Assembly: GCA_000388065.2 (NCBI GenBank)
Contig: KB932207.1
Length of the DNA: 61,188 nt
Origin: Fonticula alba ATCC 38817
Taxonomy: Eukaryota; Protista; Nucleariida
Reading direction: 5' to 3' (one strand)
Below the pieces are notes generated by a model that was not told the origin of the DNA, did not search any database, and saw only the letters and a list, made by a program, of their open reading frames with translations. Both the position numbers and the translations under genes were made by a program. Shown here piece after piece: positions 2,298 to 40,943 of this stretch (position 1 is the stretch's first letter; each line of letters begins with the position of its first letter).

Positions 2298-3134
2298 TCA
2301 GTAGCGCTCGTTGCCCTGGTGGCGGAACTCGACACGGATCTTGCGCTTCTTGTACATGTTCTCGAGCTTGGAGCGCTTCTTGCGGTTCTTCTTGTCAATG
2401 TGCTTAATGTTGACGCCCTCCTGCGGGTCGAAGCCGAGGCTGGACATTCGCCCGAGGGGGGTGGGCGTGGGGGAGGGGGGGGGGAGCGGCGAGGGAAAAG
2501 CAGGCGACGAGGTGGACGGTCAGCAGGAGCGAGGCACCCATGCACATGTGAAACGGCAGCAGCCGGAGGAGGAGGAGAAGGGAAAGGGGGAAAAGAAGAA
2601 GAAGAAAGGAGACCACACTTGCGCCGAGACACACGCACCGGTACCAGTTCATGGCGGCGAGGAGCTTCTTACGCTGGTCGACGCGCATGCCCATGCGATC
2701 CAGGCCAATCTTGTCCATGGAGAAGAGGGCCTCCCAGCTCTCCATCTTCGGGAGGAAGCGATCAAGACCGGCACCAACATGCGTGACAAAGCGCTCGAGG
2801 GTGATGCCGTCTTCGGAGGTGAGGGGGGGGGGGCGAAAAGGAAGGCAGGCGAAGAGGAAGGAGTCAGGGTGGAAGTTGGCAAGAGGGTGATGGGGGAACA
2901 ATGAGGGCGGGTTGGCGGGCGCATGGAGCGGCACGCACTGCGCTGTTCGGGGACCGTGCGGCGGGTGGGCCCGGTGACCGGGGCAAAGGGCGAGGTGGCC
3001 GCAAAGCGACGGGGCTGGCTGTGAGAAGAGGGGATGACGGCGGCCGGAGCGACGCGCAGGGCGGCGGCGGCGGCGGTGACGGGGACACGCCCCATCAGGG
3101 CACGCCCGCTCAGCGAGGCGGCGGAGAGAAGCAT
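2298..3134 (-). CDS. FYV4: Mitochondrial small-subunit ribosomal protein mS41 / Fyv4 (IGR domain), spliced
   Basis: A presequence-like N-terminus (MLLSAASLSGRALMGRV) precedes an exon reading TLERFVTHVGAGLDRFLPKMESWEALFSMDKIGLDRMGMRVDQRKKLLAAMNWYR, matching the IGR/SAM-like Fyv4 pattern. The basic last exon reads LGFDPQEG...KKNRKKRSKLENMYKKRKIRVEF...Y*. Confidence 0.7.
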
Positions 3135-3535
3135 GGTCTCTCACAAATCGACAGAAGGGGAGCACTACAAGCCGGGGAAAAAAGCGGGCGGAGGTGGACA
3201 CAAGGTGAGCTTGGCGAAGGGACAGATTCGGGGCGGGGCGGGGGGGGGGGGGAAAGAAGAAGGCGCGCAAGGCCGCCAGAGGACGAGCAAATAATTGAGA
3301 GCAGCAGAGACGCCGAGAAAACGCGGCATGGGCGGGGCAGGGCGATAGAGACGGCAGTGGCAGTGGTGGCGATAGGAGTAGGGGAGGAGGGGGGGGGGAG
3401 GGGGCGAGACAGAGGGAGGCGGGGCGGAGCGAGCAGAGGAGGGGGCAGGGGAGAGATACATCTAGGAAGGCACGGGGATCTGCGATGGGTGTGGGTGCGG
3501 GACGCGACCCGGGGGTTCGCCCGTGCGAGGTGGCG

Positions 3536-3571
3536 TCGAAAAAAGGTAGGGCCCAAGCCACAGGACGCCCC
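3536..3571 (+). repeat. 36-bp direct repeat, copy 1 (tcgaaaaaaggtagggcccaagccacaggacgcccc)
   Basis: Identical to 5437-5472. Confidence 0.9.
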
Positions 3572-7125: not shown

Positions 7126-10100
7126 CTACTTGGCCGCCACGCGGGCCGGCCGCGCGGGGGCTCCCAGCGGCGAGGAAGTCACCCGGAGGATGATCGCAAC
7201 AACGGCATCGGCGATGACATCCGCCAGGGCCCCGTTCCCGGTGGACCCGGCACCCGTCCAGCTGAGCTCCACACTTCCGAAGGCCAGATCCGGATCGGCA
7301 AGCAGGGCCTTCGAATCGTCGGCCGGAGGCGGGACATATGACAGCCGGACGGTTTCCATCACCTGCGAGTGCGATGGCGCATAGGGGCATGTGCGCGGCC
7401 AAGCCCACCACCCGACCGGAGGAGGGCATGATGGGAAGAGGAGAGGGAGGCATGAGGAAAAAAAAAAGGCCCAGCGTGAGTGTGAGCAAGAAAAGGGCGC
7501 GCAGAGCGCGAAAGGGAAGCCCCCCCCCACCCCCGCGGAATGTGCCAGGGCCCCGGCCCCGGCAAACCGGCCCAGGTGGATGGCCACATGCGCACCTCGA
7601 AATCCACCGAGTCCGGCAGTCGACGCATGTCCACCCCGCGATCGGCCGGGTCGACCAGAGGCCGAACCGAGTAGATGGCCGCCAGGGCTCGGACCACCCG
7701 GCGCCAGATCCGGCCACTTGCCGGCGGCTCGGCCCCCGGTTTGGACGGCGCCCCGAAGGAAGGGGGCCGGGTGCCAGCCGGCGGGGCCAGGGGCACGGTC
7801 AGCGACTGGGCCACCGCGCCGCCGATGTGCACCACGTGCGAGGTGAAGGCCTCCACGTCCTCCGGTGCCAGGAGGTGGGCCTGGTAGTTGCGCCGGACCA
7901 GGACCCCCTCCACCAGGACATTGTCGGCGTCGGGGCCGGCACGGGCCGAGGCGGTGCCGGGATCCCGGCCTTCGACCTCGCCATCGGGGCCCAGCTGCAC
8001 GGCCACCCGGTCGGCCAGCTTGCCAACCACCGTGGCCACTTGGGGCATCTGCACCCGCAGCGAAACTGCCTCCGTATTTTCCGGCGTGTGAATGACCATG
8101 TCCGGGCGCATGGGCCCGACGCCGGCCACCGAGAGGCTGCCCTCGGCCATGGCATGGAGCTGTGACGCAAGGCGGTCCATTTGACCCCGCTCGCCGTGCA
8201 CCAGGACCAAATGCGCCGGGGCCACCTGGGCAATGTACCCGGCGTTTTGGGTGAAGTCCACGTGTGCCGAGAAGGAGATCGACCGGACGTCCATCTTCAG
8301 GGGCTTCTGCCGGCCATCGAGGGTGGTGATGTCCGACCGGGACTTGAGGATGTGCTGAGGGCCGGGTGACCGGTGCGAGCACGCCCCACAGCCCGGCCCC
8401 ACCCGGTGGAGAGGGAATCCGGCCGAGGGGGCCCCAATGCACGTCCGATGGGGTCAGGGCAAAGACAGCGAACAGGCCCCGCGGCAACGGGCAAAGGTGT
8501 GGCAGCAGCGATGAAGCGATCGGGGGAGGGGGGCGAAAAAAAAAACAAACAACAAACAACCCCTGGCCCCAGCCAGGGGGGTTGCCCGTGTCGCACCTTG
8601 GCCAGAGTTCCCTCCACGCAGTAGCCCGCGATGATGACCATGTTCCGCTCGTCATCGCACCAGGCGTCGAAAAGCTGCCGCGAGAGGCCGCTCTGGAGCA
8701 TGCCCGGGCTGGCCACCACCACGCATGGCAGGCCGCCATCACGGCCGTCCAGCAGCTCGGCCGCTCGGTTGGTCAGCGAGGTAATGTGCCGGAAGACAAA
8801 GGGATTCCGACGCTCGACATTCATGGCCCGGCGAACGCGGTCGTTCATGGAGTTCGTCCAACGCCGGTACTCCCGGAGGCACATTTCCGCCAGCTCCGAG
8901 GCATAGTACACCGGCACATGGCGAAGCTCCGGATGCGAGGCCCAGTACTCTTCCAGGATGAGGAGAAGCTCCTGCGCACGGCCGCTGGCGAAGACCGGCA
9001 GCAAAACCCGGCCGCCTCGGTCCAGCACCGTGGTCCGGATGGCCGCGGTGAGGAGCTGCTCGCGCTCGGCGCGCGGCATGTGGTCCTGCTTGCCGTAGGT
9101 GCTTTCGCAAATGAGGACATCCACCCCGGGGGCGGCTCCATCGCCGGGGTTGCCTACCAGGGCCGGGAGCTCGGCCGCCGGCAGGTGGCGGTCCTCCTCG
9201 CGCGAGTAGTCACCCGTGTAGACCACCCGCACGCCGCCCGGGAACTCCAACGAGAAAACCGCCCCGCCAAGGACGTGCCCGGCGTAGGCCGCACTGAAAC
9301 GCACCCCGGCCACGGTGACCGATTGGTGGAAGTTCACCTCACGCGCGCGGTGGAAGCACCGGATCATGTCAGTCTCATTGAAGGGAAGCAGGTGCGAGGA
9401 GGATGACTCATCAGCATCATTGATGAGGCTCCCGCTGTGTGCGTGTGTGCGTGTGCGTGTGCGTGTGCGTGTGTGTGTGTGTGTGTATATGGGAGAGAGA
9501 GGGAGGGGGGGGGGGAAAGAGAGGGACAGACGGGCGAGTGGAGGGTGGGTCAGCAGGCGCTCGGGGTTGATGGGCAGGGCGAGAGGGGCGACCAGCCGTG
9601 CGCACCTGACACGCAGGTAATCCTTGATGAGTAGATGCCCGATGGCTTTGGTAGCATGAGTCATGTATACCGGGGCCTTGAAGCCCTTGGTCTGGACAGG
9701 TGGGCGCCGCCGGCCAAGTTGGAATGCGTGCAAACGTGTGCAGATGTGAGCATGCGCGCGTGGGTGTCGCGATCGCCGGGGAGGGGGGAGAAGAGTTCAG
9801 CCCCGCCGACTAGGTGTGGATATGTGCGCATGCGTGTGTGTGCGCGTGTGCGTGCGCGTGTGCGCATGCATGGGGCAATGGCCGATTGGGAGCTTGCCGC
9901 CTGCGTACCCGCTCGGTGAGATACGGCAGAGCGCCGATGTGGTCCAGGTGGAAGTGCGACACCAAGACCAGGTCAATCTTAGCCGGATTAATGTGGTCCA
10001 GATAGGGGAGACTCGCGGGGCCCTGGCGCCCAGGGTGGATACCACAATCCAGCAGAACCGAGCAGCCACGGAATTCCACCAGCACACAGGACCGGCCGAC

Positions 10101-11825: not shown

Positions 11826-14800
11826 TCAAACCAGACGATGAAGACCCCGGTGCTGCTGGGGATCCACCCCATCGGAGTGGTCGGCCACATGAGGGCCCGG
11901 AGCGCCTGCAGGGTCCTTGGGCCAGGGGTGTTCGGCCTGACGGTATTGTTGCTGGTGTTGCAGGAGCAGGTGGTTTTGGTGGAGCTGCTGCTGCTGCATC
12001 AGATGGAGCTGCTGCTGCTGCTGCAGCAGCAACATCTGCTGCTGTTGTTGCAGCTGAACATGCATAAAGTGCTGCTGCTGCTGCTGCTGCTGCTGCTGAT
12101 AAAGATGGGGAGCCGGCCCCGGCGGGGGGGCTGCCCCTTCGTAGCCCGGGAGGAATGTGTTGGCCGCGGCGGCCAGGATGGCCGGATCCACCGGGCCATC
12201 CTGCTGGAGGGATGCCTGCAGCGCCTCCAGGTACTGTTGCTGCCGCAAGGCCTGAACATGCTGCTCATATTCGGCCAGCTGCCGGAGGTACTCGGCCCCA
12301 GGGTCGTAGTCCGCCCCGCCATGCGGGTCTCCGGCTTCCTGTCTATCGGCCCAGTACCACTGCTGATCGGGGTGAAGGGATTGGTGTGGGAGATGCTGTT
12401 GCAGCAGCAGCTGCTGCTGCTGATGCTGCTGTTGGGCGTGGTACTCTTGGTAATACTGCAGTTGCAGCAGCTGCTGCTGCTGCTGTTGGCTGACGTACTC
12501 GGGATAATGCTCTGCCGGCTGGGCCGACTGGTGGCCAAGAACCAGCTCCATCTCGAGGAGCTCCTCCAACGGCAAAGTGGCCGCCTCGTGTGGCAGCACA
12601 CCAAGTGACTCGACCACCGGGCCGGCCGTGCGTCCGGTCGTGGTGGCCTCATCACGAGCAGCAGCGGCCAGGGCCGCCGCATGCTCGGCTCGAGCGACGG
12701 CCCTTTGAAGTTCGTCGGCCGCCCGCCCGCGCGAGGGGTGCTCCTCGGCATCGGCCCCGGCGGGGGCCAGTGTGCCGCCAGGCCAGCCGGCCATCGGGTC
12801 CTCGTCAAGCCGCGCCGCTCGAGCAGGCCGCTGGTCCGGCTGACCTTGCCCGGTGTGCGACGAGTCTACCGGCGAGTCGAGGACCAGCGAAGAGGAAGAG
12901 CACTGCCCCAAGCGGCGATGGTAGTGCCGCGTGTCGATGGCAAACGAGTCCAAGGCCAGGGGATGGCCATCGCCACTGGGGCCGGGGGGGCCTGGAGTGG
13001 AGGCGCCCGAGGCCGGGGGCGCACCCGAGGCCGGACCATCGGGCACCGGGGATGCCGCGGGCCCGGGCGAGGTGGTGGCATCCAGCGCCGGGGACATGCC
13101 GGGCGAGCCGGAAGCCGCGACCGCCACCCCCCCGGCCGGGGAGTGGTGGTGCGCCCCGAAGCCACTGGCCCCGGCAAAGTGCTTTCCGGCGCTCGATCGC
13201 CGGGTGAGCGATGCCGACCGGACGGGCCGCATCGGGCCCCCGGTGTCCGGAGGCCCCGGGGGGAGGGGCGACAGCCGCCACCGGTCAGGCCCGACATGGC
13301 CAAAGGACGAGGCGGAGGGCGAAGACGACGAAGGGGGGATCGGAGGCCGGCTCGAGCCGGGCCCTCGTGTCAGGCGGGACTGGTCGAAGCTGTGGCCGCG
13401 CATGTGCATCGGGGCCCGGGGGTCATCGAATGCCGGCGGTCCATTGGAGATACCGGCCGGCGAGCGGGAGGAGGCCTGAAGGAAGTCCAGCGACGGGCTG
13501 AAGGACATCGATCGGGGGAGGACCCCAAAGGCCGAGGGGGGCAAGTCCCCGGGCGGGTGCCCGAGCAGCGGCGGCGATCCGCGGCCCAACGGCGCCGCCG
13601 TCGAATGCAGCGCCGGATACGGGCTCCCGGCCGAGGCAGCCATGAAGGCGGCCGCCGAGTAGTAGGGATCGTCGGCCGGCGGCAAGAGCGGCGGCAGGAA
13701 GGGCGACGCGCGGAACATCAGCCCGGGAAGACTGGTCGACCGATTGTGCGAGGGGGAGACCGTGGCAGCGACGGCCGCCGCGGCCGACAGGACCACCGGC
13801 GTCCCGGCCAAGCCCAAATGCTCGAGGGAGGGCGAGTCCCCGCGCGAGAAGGAGGGCGACCGCGCCCGGGGAGCCGGCGAATCAACCGCGGCCGTGGTCG
13901 TGGCGGTGCCAGTGGCGGTGGCGATGCCGGCGGCCGAGCCGGCCGAGCCGGCCGAGCCTGCGCCAATGTGACCAGGGGACGCCTCGGCTCGAGCTCCCCG
14001 CGACCCCGGGCCCAGTTCCCCGGTGCCTGGGGCCCACCCCAGGGGGCTAGGTCCTGTCGGGCCGAGAGAGGCCCTGCTACCGGGCCGGCTACCGGCCGTC
14101 GGCAGGGCACCCGACGCGGCCGCACCATGGGCACGCGCGTGTGCCGGGGCCGTGGAGCATGCATGCGCCAGTGGAGACTCGGCCGCGGTGTTCAGGCCCG
14201 CGGTGGCGGCCACCCCGGGCCCGGACCGTGACTGGGCCGCTAGGAACCCGGCCCATGTCCAGGACCGGAAGTGCACACACACCAGAGCCCCACTCCCATC
14301 GGGCGAGTGGCGCGTCGCCAGGCGCTCGAGGGTCAGGTCGTCGGCCGGCGGGCTGTGGTCCACCAGCCGGGGGAAGATCAGCCCAGACTCCCGGCAGTAT
14401 GACACGCTGGAGCACACGCCCGAGGGGTGGTCCTCGGGCGGCGCGGCGTACCCGGTCCCGGGCGAGGGGAAGTACGGTAGCCGGACCACCTCCTCAGGGT
14501 CATGCTGCTGGACATCGTCGGGCCCCGGGCGAGCGGGCAGGCGACGCCCCGGATCGCCGGGCGCCCCGGTGGCCGAAGTGCCAGGGGAGGGCATGTCGCC
14601 ATTGCGAGGGCCGGTGACGGCCTCGACCTCGGCCTCGACCTGGATCCTGGGTGCAGCCTCGGCCGCGGCATCGGCCGCATCGGCGGCCCCCTTGGCGATG
14701 GCTGCCCCGTCGGGGGCAGCCTCATGACCGGGGCCGAGATCGCCCGGCATGGCCGGGACGCCGGCCGATGCCGATGGCCCGGAGGCCTGGGTCACGGCGT

Positions 14801-17800
14801 GCCAGCTCCCTCGGACATTCGGATAGCGGGGCAGGCTGCCGAGCAATTGGTTGGCGCTCTTCGGCGATGAAGACAGGGGGATGTAATAGGAGGAGGTCAT
14901 GGAGGAGAGCGACGACGTGGAGGGGGAGGCGGACAATGCTGGCGACCCGGATTCCGGGGTGGCCCGGGCTGACCCGGGCCCCGGGCTGCCGGGATCCAGG
15001 CCGAGACTCCGAACGGCCGGAGCCCGGGGCGCGAGGCGCGACTCCACCGGCGAAGGGGTGACCAGTGCCATGTCGGCCGGCTGCTCGGGCGACCGGCCGG
15101 CGCTGGCACTCCCACCCGCCGACAGGGGAGTCAGCAGCATCGGCGAGGAGGCGGCCGCCGGCAGGGATCGCGAGGGCGAGGGCGCCGCCGGGTCCGATGC
15201 CGGGGGCAGGGACGCATGCGAGCGTGAGGCCAGCAACAATGGCTTCCCCGGTGTCCGAGAGCGCGGGGCCGTGCCCTCGGACGGGCCGAGCCCCGAGTGG
15301 CCGGGCCCTCCCCCGGCGGGCCCTCCCCCGCGGCCGGCCATGTCCGACGGCTCTGCCAGCGGGTTCGGGCCGGCGCCGGGTCCGGGGGCGGTCGGCCCGC
15401 CCGGGGCCCCAGCCACGCCGGAGGCGAAGGACAATTTGTGCAGCCGCGAGAAGGACAACCGCAGGCGCTTGCTCAAGCTGCTGAAGCGATTCCGGTATTG
15501 GGCCTTGGTGGCCGGGCTGCCGCTGTCGGCCGACGAGGACCCGCCGTCCGGGGTGAGGCAGCGCTCCGACCCCGGGCTCGGCGAGGGGGGGATGCTGCTG
15601 ACCGAGCGCATCCCCGGCTCGGAGGCGGTCTTCAGCAGGGTGCCCAGGGCGGGGGAGGCCCCCGGGGCCGGGGGAAGGCCGCCCAGCGACCGGGTGCTCT
15701 GGTTCACCGGGCTGGCTCCAGCCGAGAAGGAGGTCACCGGCGGCCGAGAGGCCGGAGCAGTGGCGCTGCCGGCCGCCGCCGGGGAGCCCCCGGCAGGCTC
15801 CATGCCGGAGGCCGAGGATGGCAATTTGCCGGGGCCCGGGCCCCGGGGGTCTGGCCCGGGCCCCGGCATGTCGGCTGGCCGAGGCACCGTCGGCACGCCG
15901 ACCACCAGCGTCGAGCAGGTCGGCATGGCCCGAGACTCGGGCGTCGAAAGGGCCGGAGGCCGAGCCTCGGGCCGGGCGTCCGGTCGATCATCTGCGCTCA
16001 GGGGGGCCTCGGTGCCGAGCGGCGACCGGCCGGGGGAGGTGGTGCGCATGTGCCCCGGGCCGCGGCCCGGCGAGGGGCTTGCCGATGGGCGCAAGCCTGG
16101 CACATCGGAAAAGGGCGATGGCGAGGTGAAGCAGCCCACTTGGAAGATGATGGGCGATGACCGGGGCGCATAGGCCGCCCGGATGTTGGCCATCAGGCGC
16201 AAGTGTCGCTGGGGGTCTGGACACGGCATGCGCCGGTGGCGAAGGCCAGACAGCCGGAAGGCAAGCCCCGGCATTGGCACCGGAAGGGGCAGCGCGCGCG
16301 CGCGGCAAGCAGGCCGGTTAGGCGGGGGAGGGAAGAACGGCAAAAGGGAGCGGGCCCGGGCCCGCGCCGGCTGGCAGCGGAGGGGGCGGCAAGCCAAAGG
16401 CACAGCACGCACCTGCCGTGAAGAAGATGATCCGGTGACAGCGTGTCATGCCGGGATCCACCACAAACAGCGCACACAGGGGATCCTCCTCGTGGGAGGC
16501 TGCATCCGGCAGGACCGGCCAGCGGGACTGATCGGCCGCGGCCTGGAGGTCCAGCCCGGTGTCGCTGCGCGGCGCGGCAAACACCTCGGGCACCACGCGG
16601 AAGAGGGACCCCGGGGTCAGGTAGACCCCGGACCGGGGGCCGGCCGGGTCGGCGGACCCCGGCGGCACGTCAGCCGCCTCCGAGGGGCCCGGCCGGGTCC
16701 ACTCCAGGGTGGACAAGAGCCACGGCCACCGGAGGCACACGGAGAAGGCCTCGAAGAAGACCGACGCCGTGGAGAGCGGAAGCGGCCGGGGGGCGGCCGC
16801 CGGGGTGCCCGTGCGCGGGGAAGTGGGACTCGGTGGCCCGGATGGCCCGGCCAGCCCGGTGGAGCTGCCGGTGGCCGAGCGCCCGGGCCCCGGCGGGAAG
16901 TCCAGCCGGTCGGGCGTCGGGGCGCCGGGGTGGCGCAGCCCGGTGGCGGGGCCGCCGCCGGCGCCCGGCCACCCCCCCGGGTGCTCCGGCGCCGACACCA
17001 ACATCCGCACGATCGAAGGCACCCCGATGGGCGGAGGGGTCGAGGACCAGGCGTCGCGGAAGGTGCGCTCGGTCAGCCCGCCAAACGGCGGGGCCGTGGC
17101 CGCCGCGAGGCACGGGTTGGCCGACGCGCCGCCCTGGGCCCAGCGCTGGCTGCGAGCTCGGAGGACCGCCGCCGCGGCCAGCCCGGCCGCCGCCGGGGCC
17201 GACATCCAGCTCAAGTCCGACCGGGTGGGCAGATGCTCGATGTTCAGCGGCAGGGGCGGGCTCATGCGCAGGTGAAAGCGGCTCGGCGGGCCCCGGTGCC
17301 CGGGGGGGAACCCCTGGTCGGGGGTGGTGGCGCCGCCGGCCGAATGGGCATCCTCGGCCCCGGGTGTCGGGGCCAGGTCGCCCACCGAATGGGCCAGCCG
17401 CAGTCCGGCCAGCAGGGGCGCCCCCTGTCCCGGGGGCAAGACAGGCCCGGTGCCGGGGCCACCGGCCCCGCCGGCGATGGGCCCCGGCGTCAGGTATCTC
17501 ATCGTGGGCGGCGCCTCGGCCAGCGGGGAGGGCGGCTCGCCTGCAGCATCGGCGCCCTGCATCCGGACGCCGATGGGCACCGACTCCGACCGGGCATGGC
17601 GGCTGCCGGGGCTCGGCTTGGCCAAACGCGGGAGCGGTGACAGGCGCCCGCCGGCCCCGGCGGCCGGAGAATGCCCGCCGGCCGTGCCAGCAGCCGGGCT
17701 CAGCGGCGACAGCGGACTGGCCGGGCTCAGGGAGTCGAGCCCGCTCCCACCGGACAGGAGATTCCCCAGGGACAGAGACCCCGCGAGGCAGCCACCGGCC

Positions 17801-18730
17801 TGCGCGGCCCCGGACCCACGCGGGCTGAACACACACCCGGCAAAGAGCGAGGCCACCAGGGCCGAGCGCAGGGAGGCCGCGATGATGGCCGTCGACAGGT
17901 CGGAGTCCGCGCGCAAGGCATCCAGCTGGCTGCCGGCCGCGGTGAAGAGGTCCGGTGCCGGGTCTGGCAGCGGCAAATCCGGCGACTGGCCGCCAAACAG
18001 CAGCCACCCAAGCACCGAGAGGGTGAACGGCCCGGACGGGGCGAAGATGACATTCGGCCGCGGCCCGGCGGACAGGGCCACCGGCCGGACCAGGCCCACG
18101 TCCTCCAGGGCCGAGAGGATGCGCCAATCGGTGGCCGTGCGGGTTTCATACTGGCCATTGGACAGCAGCCGGCTGAGGACCGCCACGCCGGGCTGCAGGA
18201 TCCCCGGGACCAGGGGGCCCCCGGCGGCCATCGCCCCGAGCCCGGGGCTGGTGACCGTGCTGCCGGGGCCCCCGCCGCAGGGCGGCGGTACCGAGCTCAG
18301 GAGGCTGGTCGAGGCCGAGTGAACCAGCCGCCGGCCGGGGGTCAGGGCCGAGGCCGGGGTGGTGGCCCCGGTGGCACGGGGGTCCGGCACCCGGCCCGGC
18401 GGCGTGCGCGCCAGAATCCGCACCACCGTGCACAGCGCCCGGCCAATGGGCAGGAGGGACGCCTCGCGTGCCAGCCCCAGGGAGGTTGTCAGCCAGAGCC
18501 GATAGCACACCCGTCCCGAGGTCGAGGGGGAGGAGGCGTCCCCGGTGCCGGCATCCCCCGCCTCCAGCAGGGTCAGGTCCGTGCCGGAGGAGCGCGAGTG
18601 CGACAGGAGGTGATCCGCCGGGCTGGGCGTCGGCGAGGCGGCCCGGCCGGCGGCGTCCACCCGGCGGAGGACATCGGCGCTGTGCGATCGCCCGAGGCCG
18701 CCGGAGGTGCCCGGGCTGCTGGGGTCCATT

Positions 18731-18771
<41 letters not shown>

Positions 18772-21622
18772 CCCGGGGGCGTTGGCCGATCCCGGGCCCG
18801 CCGCGGCGCTGCCCGCCCCCGAGGGATTCCCGGCCGAGCCCGGAGCCTGGGCGGCCCCGCCGCCGGCCGGACGCAGGGCCGACGCGGCAGCCGTCAGCAT
18901 CTGCACACAAGTGACCGCCAGCCCGGGGTGGCCACCAGTTCGGGCACAAATGTCCACGGCAATGGCATCGCCATCGCCAGGGAGCCCGAGCACCGGCGGG
19001 CGCTGGGGCCCGGCCGCGGGGAGGGCACCTCCGCCACCCCCATCCACCGCGGCGGGGGCCGGCGCCGACAGGCCTTCCCGCTGGAGCCCGGCATCCGACC
19101 GGAAGGACAGCATCGTCGTGGGGAGGGCCTCGGCCGAGGACCGGCCGAAGGTCCAGCCCCGGTCGTGGGACACCTGCTCCAGCAGGGCGGCCACCTGCTC
19201 CGGGCCCCACAGGCGTAGGCGCACGCGCGAGCCGGGAGGCCACACCCGGAGCAGAGCCAGGCGCGTCTGGGCGCACGCGGTGCACACCTTGCCCCGGGGC
19301 ACGGGGCTGGCCACCGGCGGGGGAGCCCCCCCGGAGCCGGGGTCCGTGGCAACCGGGATCGGCCGCTGCAAGTCGCACGCCAGCAGCCGGGCGCACGATC
19401 GCGGCGAGCCAAAGAGAACCACCGAGCGCAGAACCTGCCCCGGGTCCCCGGACCAGTGTGCCGAGCTGAGCGCCCGGGCAAAGCTCTCGATGACCGCCGG
19501 AGAGGCGCACCGCGACAGGGCATCCACCCCGTCGATGATGAGCAGCGTCCGAGCCGAGGCCGGGGGACAGGAGCAGGCCGCCTGCGGCCGGGCCATCCCC
19601 GGGGGCTGGACATCGTCCAAGGACCGCCAGGCCGGCCCGCGCCGAGCGCAACGTGGCGACGCCAGCGGCGGCCCCCCCGGAGCGCCTGCCAGCAGCCGGG
19701 TCGGCAGCTCGGAATCCGATGCCGCCCGTCGGAGACCGGAGGAGCCGCCCTCCGGGCCAGGGCCCGGCCCGGCCCCGGGCCGCCCGCCAGCAGGCTGGCC
19801 ACCTTGCTCGCAATCCGGCCGGTGCCAGCGCGACAGCTCGTCCTCCATGCCCAGGTCGCCGGGGCCCGGGGTGGCCAGCGACTCGGAAATGGCCCCAAGA
19901 GGCCCGCCCGCCGCGAAGATGGCCTTGAACCAGGCCAGGCTGGCCTCGAGCCCGGCCCCGGCCGCCGGCAACGTCGGCGACAGGAGAAAGGGCGGCGTGG
20001 CGGCCCCGGGCGGGAAGCCGGCCCCGGCCCCGGCCCCGGCCCCGGCCCCGGGCCCGGGCCCGGGCCCGGCCGCCGGGCCAGGGAACGACAGCCCCGGCGG
20101 TGTTGACCGCCCGGCACCGAAGGAGGCCGAACGGCGGAAGGCCGCAGCCGCGGCTGCCGGCCCGGGCGGCTCCTGCCCGGCCGGCCCATCGCCCCCAGAG
20201 GCATGGGCATCGCCCATGGCCATGGTGGTGCTGGTGGCAATCGCCGCCGGGTGAAGATGCTGGTGGAAGGATGCCTGGCGGCGTGGGTGCAGGGGGTGGT
20301 CGGACACGGGCCCGGGGACGGGCGACACCTGGCCCGGCGGGTGGAGCCCGGCAGCGACGGACCCCGGGGCCAGGTGAAGCATCGAGGCCGAGATGTGGGC
20401 ATTCAACTGTTGCCAGAAGACGGCCGGGTCGTGAAAGGCCCCGGTGGCGGTGCAAGCGCCGACGGACCCGGAGGGAGGGGCCCGGCCGGCCGCCGGCCGA
20501 CCCCCGCCGAGCCCCTGTGGCCCGGGGGAGGGGCCACGGCCGGACGCCGCCCCGGCCATCCCCTCGCCATGCAGCAGGGGCGACAGCGGCGACGGGGCCG
20601 CAGAGTCGCCGTCCGGCGGCTGGGTGCCAGCACTGGCGGGCGGACTGGGCGAGGAGGGCTTGAAGATGTGCTGCTGGCGGAGCTGTGCTTGGCGCCCGGG
20701 AGGGGCGCAGCAGCACCAGGATGAGGGAACCTGCGGGTGGAAGTAGCTCCCGAGCAGGGCATTTCCCCCGCTTTGGGGAAGGGTGATGCTGGGGACGCGT
20801 GCATCCGTGCGACCGCCCGTGCAGCAGGCAAATCCGTCGGGAGGGGGAGGGGGNNNNNNNNNNNNNNNNNNNNNNNNNNNNNNNNNNNNNNNNNNNNNNN
20901 NNNNNNNNNNNNNNNNNNNNNNNNNNNNNNNNNNNNNNNNNNNNNNNNGGGGGGGGGGCAATGCACAGGGTAGGTGTGAGGGAAGGCAGGCCGGCCAGGC
21001 AGGACGGCCGGACCGGAGCCACAGCTGGCCGGGGTAGAGGTCAGGTACGCACACAAGAGCCGGGCCGCGTTCAGACCACCAATGCGCCAGCGCCAGGGCC
21101 GATGTGGAGCAGCCACTCCCGCGCGGGCCGGTGACGATGGAATTCTGCCCGGCAAGGACACGCTCCTTGATGTCTGGGCATGCGGGGCAAGGGCCGTGGG
21201 TGTGGGCGTGGTCAGGTCAGCATGGGGCCGCGTCATGGTATGGCCGACTGTGAGGCGCTCCTCGTGCCCGGGCCGGTGGGTGGGGAAGGGAAAGGGGGGG
21301 GGGGGGGAAGGAAAGCAAGGGAGAAGCCCCCATCACACATCGACGGACCATCGATCATCGGCTCGATGTAGTAATAGTTGGATCTGCGGGAGGGCCGCAC
21401 CGGGCCATCGGTGCAGAAGGTCTTGCAGGTGTCCGGCCCGGCGCCGGAGGGGTGCCCGGGGGTGTAGGAGCTGGCCCCGGGCGGGGTGGTGGCCGTTGGC
21501 GTGGCCGACGTGCCGAAGCTCGGGATACGATGGTGGCCACCGCCGGACGGGGAGCTCCGGCCTCCCGGGAGCGGGTAATTCGAGCCCGGCGTCACGCCGG
21601 GCACCGCGATCGGCGTCACCAT
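11826..21622 (-). CDS. Giant (~3,000 aa) low-complexity protein with an N-terminal degenerate STAND/AAA-like P-loop NTPase module and a poly-Q C-terminus, at least 4 exons
   Basis: Three introns join in phase: 21174-21348 (GTCCGT..CAG), 20789-21052 (GTGCGT..CAG) and 16217-16412 (GTGCGT..CAG). They fuse the 1578-aa and 1528-aa ORFs into one gene. Motifs: FCTDGPV..YYYIEP, IVTGPRGSGCST (Walker A-like), LLIIDGVD (Walker B), LWGPEQVAALLEQ, ICARTGGHPGL and LEDVGLV. The start ATG (21622) is tentative. Confidence 0.72.
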
Positions 21623-34464: not shown

Positions 34465-37400
34465 ACGACCTCCGGCCCCGGGGCCGCCACCGACGCCCCG
34501 GAGCCCACCTCCTCCGGGGCCAACTACCAGCCCATCTACGCCGATGGGGCGGTGGTCCTGGAGCCGGAGCAGCTGGCCATCCTGACCGCCGGCACGGTCA
34601 CCGACTGGGGCCGGCACCAGGCCCGGCGCCTGGCCGAGGATTTGACCCCGGCCGCGGCGGCCCACCTGGCCGGGGACTTCCTCGTGCAGGTGCTCCCGGT
34701 GCTGATCCTCGGCTTCCTCAAGGCCAAGGTCGACAACATGGCGTACATTGGCCTGCTCCGGGCCCTGGTCCGGGTTTTGTCCCTGCCGCGGGTGGTGGAG
34801 ACCCTGTGGCCGGGGGCCGAGGCCGCCACCGGTCCCGACACCTCGGTCCTGCCGCTGCGGCAGCTGGCGCAGGTGGTGCTGTCCACCCTGCCGGCGGCGC
34901 GGTTCTGCTTCGAGGTGCTGATCAATGGCAGTGACAGCGGCCTGGTGCCGGATGCCCCGTGCAGCCTCTTTGCCACGGATCGCCGGTCGCCCATGGCCTC
35001 CATCATGACCCTGCAGCTGGTCCGGCTGTTGGTGGATCTCCTGCCGACGGCCGATGAGCATGGGGTCCTGGCGGCGCGGCTGCGGGCCCTGGCCACCATG
35101 CCGGCTCCCGAGGGTGCGCCTTCCGACGCGCTGGCCATGGCCTTCCTGTGCCCCCCGCCCGGGGCGGTGGCCCTGCTGGAGCGCCGGCCCTTTGCGCAGT
35201 CCCTCCGCCGGGAGGGCGCGCTGCACACGCTGCAGCGCTTCCTCCAGAGCTCCTGCGTGCACCGGCCCGTCGGGCTGGGGCCGTACCTGGGGGCCTCGCG
35301 CGAGGTCCATGCCGGCCATCTGGCCGTGTGCCAGCGGCACATCACGGCCTGGTTCCACTTCCAGACCGGGTCCCTGCTGAATGTCCTGGAGCAGATGGCC
35401 ACTCAGCCGGCTGCCGGGGCCGCTTCGGCCAGTGCTGCTGCTGCTGCTGCTCGGCGTGCCGCCCGGGCCCTCTCCGGCGATGCCCTCATGTCCGATCCCG
35501 ATGGCAGCCCCATTGCCGAGGGCGGTGGGGCCGATGAGGATGATGATGCGCTGGAGGGCGCCGGGCCGATGGCCTTCGCGCTGCGCTTCCTGGCCGCCCT
35601 GCCGGCGGACATGGTCCCGGCCGGGCTGGCCACCTTCAGTCGCCTCGACACGTTGGACCTGCTGACCCATGTGGCCGGGGCCTTGGACACCACGCAATCC
35701 ATCCCCCTGCTGGTGGCCTACCTGGGGGTGGTTGCCTCGCTGCTGGTGGGCGAGGTGTTGCCCGAGGCCGGGGCCTGCGCGGCCGGCTCGGCCAGCAGTC
35801 CCGGGGCCGGGCCGGCGGCCGGTTCCCCCGGGTCCGGGTCGATGGCCGGCTGCCCCGGCAGCCAGGCCACCCTGCTGGGCCGCAGCGACTCGAGCGTCCT
35901 GAGCACCTTCGAGTTTACGCAGTCCGGCCTGGCCGAGCGCCTGGTCGACCTCTTCACCATGAGCACGAGCATGGCGGCCGATGGGCCGGCATCGGCCCCG
36001 CCGTCCAAGTGGCTGGCCCAGCTGTCGGCCTTTGTGTTTGTCTTCTTCGGGTGGCCGCTGTCGGACCACGTGTCGGCGGCCGATGCGGCCGTCATCCGGA
36101 CGTTGCCGGTCCCGCCGCCGGCGGCGCTCGAGCGTCTGCTGGGCCTGCTGCACAAGACCGTCGGCCGGCACTGCGCCGGCGCGCAAACCCAACTGCCGCT
36201 GCTCTTCCCGACGGACAATGACCCGGCGGCGCTGCCCTTCGTGCCGACGGTGCGCGAAGGCTCGGACCAGGACTACCCGGCCCCGGTGGATGAGGAGGCC
36301 AAGTCGCGCTCGCTCAAGTGTGCGTCTCCCTGTGCTGTTGCTGCCCGGCTTCTGCGGTTGGCCGGTTCCTTCGGCCCCTTTTCCGGCCCCGTCCTCCCTG
36401 TCTGACCGTTCTCCTGCCCTTGGGCCTGCTCGGCTCGGCTCGGCTCGGCCGCGGTGCTCTCCAGATGTCAAGCAAAAGGTCCAGGTCCGTGTGACCCTGG
36501 CCTCGGATTCCCTGCTGGCCGGGCATTTTGACGCCTTCGCCGATGGGACCATCAGCAAGGATGTCCTGCTGCCGGCGCAGGCCACCGTGGCGCAATTGGC
36601 CCAGGCCGTTCGCCGGATGCAGACCCACCAGTCGAGCATGATGTTCCTGGGGATCGGCCGGAATGACAGCATCGACAATGTGGTGTCCATCGATGTGGAC
36701 CCGGCCCCGGCCGAGACCTTCTCCTTCCCCTCGCCGTCGTTGGACTTCGATGACGAGGGCCACATTGCCCCGGTGTCGCCCTTTGGCATTCCCTTCTCGA
36801 AGCCCGGCGGCCACTCGGACCCGGCCGCCGGTGGCAGCGGCAGCGGCAGTAGCCGGTCATCGCGCGCCTCGCCGGACATGGCGCCGACCACCGAAGCGGC
36901 CGGCGGCCCCGACGAGGCGGCCGACCCGGAGACCTCGCGCACTTCGCGCACCCGGTCCGCCGGTCGGCGGATGCTCTCGCGCTCGAACTACCTGCTGAGC
37001 TCGCTCCGTCAGCAGGAGGCCCGGCGGCAGGCGGCCGCGGCCGCGGCCGCCCCCCCGGCCGACGAGGCCCCTGGCAACACCAGCGGCAACAACAGCAGCA
37101 GCAGCAGCGGCGGCGGCGGCAGCAGCAGCTCCGAGGATGACAGCAGCCCGGTCGGGCGCCGGCGCCGTCGCCAGAGCAGCCCCCCCTCGCGGAGTTCCTC
37201 CTCCAGCGAGGACACCGACAGCGACGAGCAGTCGGATGATCAGAGCGACAGCGAGCCCGACAGTGCCAGCATCCTGGAGCTGTTCTCGCGCGCGGCCGCT
37301 GCCCAGCCGAACATCATGCCGGATGAGGCCCAGGCGCTGATGCAGCTGATGTCCATGCTGGAGGGGGCGGCTGGCGGTGCGCGCCGCCGCGGGGGTGCCC

Positions 37401-39290: not shown

Positions 39291-40943
39291 ACAGGGCCCC
39301 ACGATGGAGTTCTTCCACAAGGCGTCGCGTGAGTTTGCTCGACGTGGACTCGGCCTCTGGCTCGGGGACGATCAGTTCGTCGAGCATGTCCCCCGGTCGC
39401 CGGACGCCATGGCCCCGGCCGAGGCCCCCAATCGGGCCCCCTACTTCGCCATGCAGTGGCTCTTCGCCCCGTCGGCTGGGCTTGGCCCGGACAGCGACCT
39501 GACCGATGTGCCCTTGACCATCGGGGCCGCCGACGCGGCTGGCCCCTTCGTCTCGGTGCCGGACGCCGGGCTCTATCCCCGGCCGACTTTGAGCCAGAAC
39601 GACGCCCGGGCCTTTGGGCAGGAGCACCTGGTGCACGCGCGCTTCTTTGCCCTGGGCCAGCTGGTCGGCTGCTCCCTGCTGAATGCCACGATCCTGGAGC
39701 TGCCCCTGAGCGCGGCCTTCTGGCGCGCGGTGGTCTTCGGGCTGGATGCGGATGTCCCGATGGCCGCCGGGCCGACCGGGGCCGCCACCTCCCCGGGCAA
39801 GCCCTGGGCCGATGCCGTGTCCGGCGTGATGGGGGCCACCCCGCGCGCGGCCGTGTGCATGGACCTCCTGGAGGAGGTGGACCCACGGCTGCACATGTCC
39901 ATGCAGCGGCTCTTCCGCTTTGTGTGTGACAAGCGCCGGATTTTGGCCGACACCGGCCTCTCGCGGGCCGAGCAGGACCGCCAAATCCAGGCCCTGACGC
40001 TGGACGGCCAGCCGCTTGAGGCCCTGGCCCTGGACTTCACCCTGCCCGGGGCGCCGCACATCGAGCTGCTCCCCCGGGGGTCGGACATCCCGGTGACCGC
40101 GCTCAATGTCGACCGGTATCTGGCCCTGGTCATCCAAAACCTCACCAAGCACTGGTCGATCGCGGCTCGTGTGGCGGCCTTCCGCGCCGGACTCGGGACC
40201 TTCCTCGTGGTGGAGGAGCTGATTCCCCTGGTGGCCGGTGGCCTCATGCGGTCGGTGGACGATGTCCCCGGCCAGGCGCCGATGGATCTGCTTCTTGGCG
40301 GTGCCACCGAATCGTGGACCTTGGAGTATCTGGCCGAGCACATCCGGCCGTCGTACGGCTTCACGGCGGACAGGTGCGTCGGGTGTGCCCATTGCTGGGG
40401 AGAGCCCCTGCTAGTTTGTTTGGGGGGGGGGGCATTTTTCCACACACACCCCGTCTCTCCGCCATTGCTGCTTGCTGACATGCGCCCTTATCCTCGACCT
40501 CCTCCCTCCTCCCCTTGCCCGGGTTGCTGGTGTTGCTGCCGCCACGCGTGCGCGCATGGGGCTTCGGCTCTCGCTCTGGCGGGGGGGAAAAAAACATCCA
40601 ACGATAAACAACCCACAGCCCCGCGTTCAAGGCCCTCCTGCGCGTGTTGTCCGAGCTTGACGACACACAGCGCGCGGCCTTCCTGGCCTTCACCACCGGG
40701 GCATCCCGCCTGCCGATCGGCGGCCTGGCCAGCATCCAGCCCCCGCTGAGTGTGGTCAATAAGACCTCCTCGCATGTTGCAAGTGACTCCAGCGCGGCCG
40801 GGCCCACCGATGACACGTCGCTTCCCAGCTCCATGACCTGCTCTCACACGCTGAAGATCCCGAACTACTCGTCCGAGGCGATCCTCCGCGAACGCCTCCT
40901 GACTGCCATCTACGAGGGCACCGGGAGCTTCCACCTCTCCTGA
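32305..40943 (+). CDS. TRIP12: HECT E3 ubiquitin ligase of TRIP12/UFD4/UPL3 type, multi-exon
   Basis: The N-terminus is ARM-like (DLESLYMLCEMLLLS; LLREQAMSMALK). The HECT domain reads HIRFDQEVGTG|GPTMEFFHKASREFARRGLGLW, LYPRP, FFALGQLVG, LALDFTLPGAPHIEL and AFLAFTTGASRLPIGG. The catalytic LPSSMTC (Cys at 40839-40841) is followed by KIPNYSS...EGTGSFHLS*. The 5' end could extend into the gap. Confidence 0.9.

Follow-up and report, generated by a model that had tools for sequence, protein, structure and literature searches.

In STAND-class proteins, the nucleoside triphosphatase (NTPase) core is followed by a helical arm carrying a GxP motif and then by a winged helix. Here we describe a predicted gene with a distant likeness to this layout in Fonticula alba ATCC 38817, a eukaryote related to fungi. 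It lies on the minus strand of a 61,188-nt window, the whole stretch of DNA that was analysed, from contig KB932207.1, and all coordinates are positions within this window. Another locus of the same assembly is identical (100%) to the NCBI protein H696_05511 of Fonticula alba. Judging from its sequence, we consider it moderately probable that this is a single four-exon nuclear gene encoding a lineage-specific, mostly disordered protein, in which a diverged STAND-like pseudo-NTPase module is joined to a scaffold tail. The front third of the protein appears to contain a stretched and probably inactive copy of the nucleotide-driven switch of immune and cell-death receptors.

Several described families invite comparison with this module. 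AAA_35 (PF14516) comprises bacterial, mostly cyanobacterial, 'AAA-like domain' NTPases of the STAND type, whereas the Fonticula host is a eukaryote. The two share, in the same order, an N-terminal G-x-V..Y-[IV]-x-R/P strand, a PRxxG-x-[ST][ST] P-loop and an hhhhD-x-x-D Walker B, followed downstream by an 'L.L..f..eqv..L' segment, TGGHP-x-L and a C-terminal winged helix with 'L...GLV'. They differ in that the QSPFNVG motif of the family is absent here, the Walker A lysine is a cysteine and no Pfam model matches. Because of disordered inserts, a module of ~330 residues in AAA_35 occupies ~1,000 residues in the Fonticula protein, where a tail of ~2,000 residues follows. The likeness to NACHT (PF05729) and NB-ARC (PF00931) consists of Walker A and Walker B islands colinear with both families, a β5/helix island colinear with NB-ARC and the common order of NOD, helical arm and winged helix. 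In addition, LLIIDGVD resembles the hhhhDGhDE Walker B of NACHT. Unlike NACHT and NB-ARC proteins of the NLR type, the Fonticula protein has lost the lysine and contains huge inserts, and neither C-terminal sensor repeats (WD40, TPR, LRR, ANK) nor an N-terminal effector domain was found by Pfam or NCBIfam in its four pieces. No Pfam match to NACHT or NB-ARC was obtained and the locus was absent from a genome search with NACHT, so that the matches to these two families are local hhalign matches only.

A further comparison is with Crinkler effectors, for which the part of PMC5289972 that draws on Zhang et al. (2016) gives the module order NTPase, helix-turn-helix (HTH) and restriction endonuclease (REase). 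Here too, a P-loop NTPase precedes a domain of the helix-turn-helix type in a eukaryote close to fungi, but the Fonticula gene has no ubiquitin-like header and no detectable REase, is present in a single copy and consists mostly of a giant disordered tail.

Motif order and profile comparison of the P-loop islands

The original prediction, made by reading the sequence, described an ordered P-loop module scattered among long Pro/Gly/Ala/Ser linkers. All motifs that it cited are present, in the order it gave and on the minus strand. Exon 1 encodes FCTDGPV..YYYIEP (21418-21359) and exon 2 the Walker A sequence GPRGSGCST (21129-21103). Exon 3 then encodes Walker B as LLIIDGVD (19545-19522), a sensor-1-like strand as VVLFGSPR (19422-19399), a β5 strand and helix SRVRLRLWGPEQVAALLEQ with the motif LWGPEQVAALLEQ resembling the STAND-type 'L.L..eE...L' (19174-19227), TGGHPGL (18939-18919) as the GxP motif, placed where a helix begins, and a winged helix that includes LEDVGLV (17977-18225, residues 877-959 of the exon 3 frame). 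Of the six AAA_35 motifs (Y[IV]xR, PRQxGK[ST]S, DxxD, QSPFNVG, TGGHPYLV and LxxxGL), five have an ordered counterpart, but QSPFNVG is absent, the Lys is lost and the P-values of the islands range from 4 × 10−6 to 0.6.

These P-values come from profile-profile comparisons. For AAA_35, bacterial genomes were searched with a DNA pattern encoding TGGHPYLV, and 23 non-redundant proteins collected in this way, 20 of which match PF14516, were aligned. The NACHT, NB-ARC and classical AAA alignments were built from five bacterial and archaeal genomes with sequences picked by their Walker A lysine motif. All four pieces of the gene were scanned with hhalign in 102 windows of 60 residues; like every other search and fold reported here, this was done on single exons or parts of them, including cut-out islands. 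With each of the four profiles, the Walker A exon gave the top window (P of 4.4 × 10−6 for AAA_35, 3 × 10−6 for NACHT, 2 × 10−5 for NB-ARC and 3 × 10−6 for classical AAA). The second-best was the Walker B island, with P-values of 3-6 × 10−4 for NACHT, 0.004-0.007 for AAA_35, 0.008 for NB-ARC and 0.003 for classical AAA. Nine of the ten best windows were colinear with the AAA_35 profile, and the same order was seen for NACHT and NB-ARC. Shuffled islands attained the observed scores in 0-3 of 60 trials, and in none of 60 for Walker A and Walker B.

Other islands matched the STAND-type profiles as well. The β5/helix island matched NB-ARC columns 130-178 (P of 0.003) and AAA_35 columns 212-230 (P of 0.03-0.04) and was colinear in both. 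Some 200 residues separate TGGHPGL from the preceding Walker B, and its counterpart in the AAA_35 alignment is the invariant TGGHPYLV. The GxP island matched columns 234-255 of that profile with a P-value of 3-5 × 10−4, a partly circular result since this very motif had served to collect the family, and the GxP position of NB-ARC with a P-value of 0.07. The N-terminal strand in exon 1 (AAA_35 columns 2-40, P of 0.037) and the winged-helix island (C-terminal columns 326-342, P of 0.05-0.08) were weak matches, both colinear. A segment directly after intron 2 (ITLPQSGG..), which by eye resembled the β2 strand of the family, was rejected at a P-value of 0.63.

With the island scan and the order of the profile matches, the proposal of an ordered module among low-complexity linkers was borne out. 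The profile check suggested for the islands likewise returned P-loop and STAND matches (P of 3 × 10−6 to 2 × 10−5 for Walker A) in hhalign, with only sub-threshold hits in Pfam. Membership of AAA_35 itself was not upheld, as PF14516 did not match, our own hidden Markov model (HMM) of the family scored ~0 bits and NACHT and NB-ARC were about as good a fit to the core. An independent line in agreement with the profile matches came from ESM features: for the part lacking Walker A, all named neighbours belonged to AAA_35, ATPase_2 (PF01637) or RNA12 (PF10443), with scores of 0.90-0.93. ATPase_2 and RNA12, at 0.90, are a lead only and have no Pfam match.

Structure prediction gave a divided answer. 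In the AlphaFold2 model of the stretch of exon 3 from the NTPase to the winged helix, only the winged helix was modelled with better confidence, at a predicted local distance difference test (pLDDT) score of 62-72, and this part of the proposed AlphaFold check was positive. When compared by VIA-align, the winged-helix model matched dozens of winged helix-turn-helix proteins (MarR, PadR, ArsR and ribosomal types) with Z-scores of 7-8.1. Such scores are middling on the scale of the tool, but the matches are uniform and the domain stands where the winged helix of a STAND protein is expected. The alignment of TGGHPGL and this modelled domain are in keeping with the predicted STAND layout, a GxP motif followed by a winged helix. 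The NTPase core, at a pLDDT of ~30-50, did not yield a confident fold.

The protein is otherwise unusual in composition and, at the sequence level, is an orphan. Pro, Gly, Ala and Ser make up 53% of the predicted residues and Lys only 0.5%. According to its composition profile, hydrophobic islands are prominent in the first third. Exon 4 is almost entirely of low complexity, with a Gln/Leu-rich tail (~12545-11900) and an in-frame CAG/CTG array. The in-frame microsatellites of the protein (poly-Ala, Gly-Ala and poly-Gln) are all short. Pfam and NCBIfam returned no matches for exons 1, 3 and 4, and for exon 2 only sub-threshold hits to AAA_25 (E-value of 0.078) and nSTAND3 (0.14) in Pfam and to PRK06547 (0.0034) in NCBIfam. 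Among the cut-out islands, the Walker B piece alone had a Pfam hit, to AAA_22 (E-value of 0.32). Across Pfam, NCBIfam, the cut-out islands and a PADLOC scan, which returned nothing, no repeat or other domain was found. Residues 405-960 of the exon 3 frame had no phmmer match at an E-value of 0.001 or lower among 1.84 billion representative proteins, and a sequence search of the PDB returned nothing. Two word-index searches with exon 3, whose candidates are limited to 1.75 times the query length, found no homolog and also not the public model of the gene itself, which was probably missed because of this length limit. A search for paralogs in the Fonticula genome, as had been suggested, found none. 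No protein of this architecture turned up in any search, in agreement with the remark in the original prediction that none was recognised.

Gene model and assembly gap

Most of the gene is covered by two minus-strand frames free of stops, one of 1528 aa at 11826-16412 and one of 1578 aa at 16318-21054. At the local base composition, a stop-free run of ~1,460 codons is expected by chance with a probability of ~2 × 10−8 per frame. The GC content at third codon positions (GC3) is 0.8-0.97 in the exon 3 frame from ~20750 to ~16400 and continues in the exon 4 frame to ~11830, while a further coding signal at ~21650-21350 belongs to the exon 1 frame. The same exon pattern emerges from a codon model that was trained on the middle part of this gene. 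The predicted gene has four exons joined by three in-phase GT-AG junctions and a length of 9,162 nt, or 3,053 codons.

Exon 1 (21349-21622), placed by the codon model and GC3, starts with an ATG at 21622 and encodes ~65 disordered residues followed by the strand FCTDGPV..YYYIEPMID (21418-21359). Neither exon frame shows a coding signal in intron 1 (21174-21348; 175 nt, GT..cccag). Exon 2 (21053-21173) encodes a helix, a strand and the P-loop, DIKERVLAGQNSIVTGPRGSGCST, and has an alternative end at 21055 in phase 0. It is followed by intron 2 (20789-21052), which measures ~264 nt as assembled and includes a run of undetermined bases (N gap) at 20854-20948 with poly-C flanks. Exon 3 (16413-20788; ~1,459 codons) is stop-free with the GC3 of 0.8-0.97 given above and encodes the remainder of the NTPase module together with the winged helix and extended linkers. 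The GC3 signal changes frame at intron 3 (16217-16412; 196 nt, GTGCGT..tccag), after which exon 4 (11826-16216; ~1,463 codons and a stop), again stop-free with in-frame GC3, encodes nearly only disordered sequence. Three opposite-strand open reading frames (ORFs) of ~515 aa, the longest of 516 aa, overlap the gene (12681-14231, 17671-19218 and 18707-20254, plus strand); they are most likely shadows of the GC3-rich coding frame and not genes.

The junction of exons 1 and 2 joins donor G|GTCCGT (phase 1) to acceptor cccag|AC and yields ..PMID-D-IKERV.., and that of exons 3 and 4 joins donor G|GTGCGT (phase 1) to acceptor tccag|AC at 16216 and yields ..IIFFTA-D-PQRHL... Between exons 2 and 3, donor GT|GTGCGT (phase 2) is joined to acceptor ccccag|C at 20788. 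A second in-phase pair for this intron, from the end of exon 2 at 21055 (phase 0) to a start of exon 3 at 20730, would reduce the gene to 3,033 codons, but the codon model favours the 21053/20788 pair because the coding signal is already present right after the gap. The giant frames, motifs and in-phase junctions reported originally were thus confirmed in the sequence. Frames, GC3, codon model and GT-AG junctions agree with the predicted single gene of ~3,000 aa with four in-phase exons, and we infer from them that the four exons form one transcript.

To judge the introns, we used Fonticula introns that are fixed by Pfam-colinear Rap_GAP exons (loci L150:1200-2050 and L148:1700-2150). These have GTGCGT or GTACGC donors, (A/C)CCAG acceptors and a length of 160-260 nt, with lengthy tracts of poly-C towards the 3' end. 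Such traits are shared by the introns proposed here (16217-16412, 20789-21052 and 21174-21348). The coding signal is absent at ~21050-20951 and returns just after the N gap; because of this loss, the poly-C flanks and the match to confirmed Fonticula introns, the gap most likely lies inside intron 2, where it may also hide a small extra exon. Since the frame 16318-21054 spans an intron and undetermined bases, its openness across them is an accident of the estimated gap length. Poly-C tracts are a plausible cause of the gap. They may also account for many of the 13 N gaps in the window.

Catalytic state and alternative readings

The Walker A lysine of P-loop NTPases contacts the β and γ phosphates, and its loss normally abolishes hydrolysis and weakens binding. 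GPRGSGCST departs from the Walker A consensus GxxxxGK[ST]: it keeps the shape of the loop and the Ser/Thr, while the lysine is replaced by cysteine (codon 21111-21109). This cysteine aligns with a lysine that is invariant in all 23 AAA_35 sequences and, in NACHT, with the lysine of GK[ST]. For NACHT, NB-ARC and classical AAA, this lysine was itself the criterion by which sequences were chosen; these sets show how the cysteine aligns but are no test of invariance. Three base changes would be needed to turn a Lys codon into TGC, which makes a base-calling slip unlikely. Cysteine at the place of the lysine, part of the original prediction, was supported. Walker B retains its Asp, followed three residues later by another Asp; VVLFGSPR still has the sensor-1-like Arg and the GxP motif its Pro. 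With the Walker A lysine lost and the Walker B Asp retained, the module is most likely a pseudo-NTPase.

We suggest that the first ~1,050 residues would form a very diverged STAND-type NTPase module, ordered as N-terminal strand, P-loop, Walker B, sensor-1-like strand, GxP helical arm and winged helix, which disordered inserts may have extended to about three times its normal length. Such a module may have kept its fold, and might still self-associate or bind nucleotide weakly, without cycling through hydrolysis. It could then be the only folded unit for interaction or oligomerisation, placed ahead of a disordered, Gln-rich scaffold tail of ~2,000 residues. The loss of catalysis and the scaffold role, and with them the function, are what we infer from these features. 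A more specific and rather doubtful idea is that a pseudo-STAND module, deprived of its catalytic lysine and drawn out by disordered inserts, is the nucleating, self-associating core of a Gln-rich scaffold that seeds an assembly or condensate in this fungus-related social amoeba, with no counterpart in any sequenced organism.

Several observations weigh against this interpretation. No curated model was significant: the best matches, with E-values of 0.078 to 0.39 in Pfam and 0.0034 in NCBIfam, fall far short of curated cut-offs, and six-frame genome searches with the Pfam models AAA_35, NACHT and AAA_16 did not list the locus at E-values up to 10. The ~0 bits of the home-made AAA_35 HMM were obtained even with the --max setting of HMMER. 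The classical AAA profile fits Walker A and Walker B equally well, so that the STAND label depends on weaker islands further downstream, with P-values of 0.003-0.08 and including the winged helix, and on the GxP motif, whose match to AAA_35 is partly circular. Between Walker A and Walker B, ~400 residues (~85 in the family) show no family similarity. The single-sequence AlphaFold2 model from the NTPase to the winged helix has a mean pLDDT of 39.5, with the NTPase part at ~30-50. The searches found no relatives in which conservation would show. Finally, part of intron 2 is hidden by the N gap and the link between the exons is a prediction from sequence.

These points bear on two alternatives in particular. 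One is that short hydrophobic patches in a wholly disordered orphan resemble the families by chance and that there is no P-loop fold. The silence of HMMER and of all curated libraries, the low AlphaFold2 confidence and the P-values of only 0.03-0.6 for several islands would fit this, but an unbiased scan placed the predicted islands themselves at the top, and nine of its best ten windows are colinear with AAA_35. The same island order recurs against NACHT and NB-ARC, few or no shuffles reach the observed scores, the ESM neighbours are coherent in family and the winged helix sits at the expected place. We therefore regard chance resemblance as quite unlikely. It is very unlikely, in turn, that exons 1-2 and 3-4 belong to separate transcripts or that the gap conceals missing or wrongly joined sequence. 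Exon 2 is indeed separated from exon 3 by an N gap whose length is an estimate. Against a split, Walker A lies in exon 2 and Walker B with the remainder in exon 3, in the correct order, and neither half would be a domain alone; moreover, two in-phase donor-acceptor pairs are available and the flanks of the gap resemble an intronic poly-C tract.

Two further alternatives accept a P-loop module and concern its activity or origin. The module might still be a switch that binds ATP, dATP or GTP, hydrolyses it slowly or not at all, and controls oligomerisation through this binding, as canonical STAND proteins do. The GxxGxG-x-ST shape of the loop, the following Ser/Thr, the Walker B Asp, the sensor-1-like Arg and the GxP Pro have all been retained and both giant frames have stayed open; however, none of the compared AAA_35 sequences lacks the lysine, and proteins that lose it usually no longer bind nucleotide or function, which makes a working switch unlikely. 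As to origin, the original prediction had suggested a domesticated Crinkler-type conflict module with the arrangement NTPase, HTH and REase, a reading that we consider highly improbable. The succession of NTPase, winged helix and a further hydrophobic island does parallel the order given in the Crinkler part of PMC5289972, and Fonticula is a relative of fungi. Yet exon 1 contains no header domain or other Pfam match and is rich in Pro, Gly and Ser ahead of the NTPase strand, and the third island has neither an REase signature nor an evident (D/E)xK motif, a Pfam match or a confident fold (AlphaFold2 confidence is low). With neither header nor REase signal, the proposed resemblance to Crinkler NTPase-REase proteins found no support, and nor did a conflict or effector origin more generally, given the empty PADLOC scan, the lack of paralogs and the housekeeping neighbours.

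The favoured reading, a diverged pseudo-NTPase module heading a disordered scaffold, describes an unusual protein, yet not a new kind of system, and opens no long-standing question. It does illustrate that a conserved switch domain can evade all standard annotation in a very GC-rich genome: owing to the 53% Pro/Gly/Ala/Ser, the 0.5% Lys and the long inserts within the domain, the module was recovered only by island-by-island profile comparison and colinearity. If it is a true pseudo-NTPase, it would be a further eukaryotic example of a dead STAND-like domain used as a structural unit, and would offer a way into one of Fonticula's many giant orphan proteins.

Neighbouring genes and the third island

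Genes identified by Pfam around the locus encode a mitoribosomal mS41 SAM domain (2404-3561, minus strand), a Beta-Casp/metallo-β-lactamase protein of the CPSF73 or Integrator-11 type (8297-9733, minus strand), an RRM protein (23555-24595, plus strand) and a HECT ubiquitin ligase (39304-40749, plus strand). This neighbourhood gives no hint of a conflict locus. Further long ORFs, of up to 1,021 aa and without a Pfam match, are found at 33886-36951 (minus strand), 33910-36405 (plus strand) and 30083-31594 (plus strand).

The third hydrophobic island (16414-16776, minus strand), delimited by the composition profile, lies at the end of exon 3 and runs into the first ~40 codons of exon 4. It has no Pfam match and an AlphaFold2 pLDDT of 38.9. 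A possible identity as Rap_GAP (PF02145) was raised by the ESM neighbours of 16414-16851, which were all Rap_GAP clusters (scores of 0.79-0.87, with 0.85-0.87 for the lead itself); a few motifs, such as F.EF..L.WP, also seemed similar by eye. This lead was rejected given the lack of a Pfam match, a negative genome search, hhalign P-values of 0.2-0.74 against two Rap_GAP alignments and the AlphaFold2 result; no match to the family profile with its catalytic RHIGND segment was obtained.

A canonical Rap_GAP domain elsewhere in the Fonticula genome (G000:C16:191074-191553, minus strand) is interrupted within its conserved part by an insert of ~35 residues rich in Pro, Ala and Ser. Inserts of low complexity may be frequent in the folded domains of this genome. 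As such an insert is seen in the same genome, the appearance of islands and linkers in the giant protein may be a genome trait and not a special adaptation.

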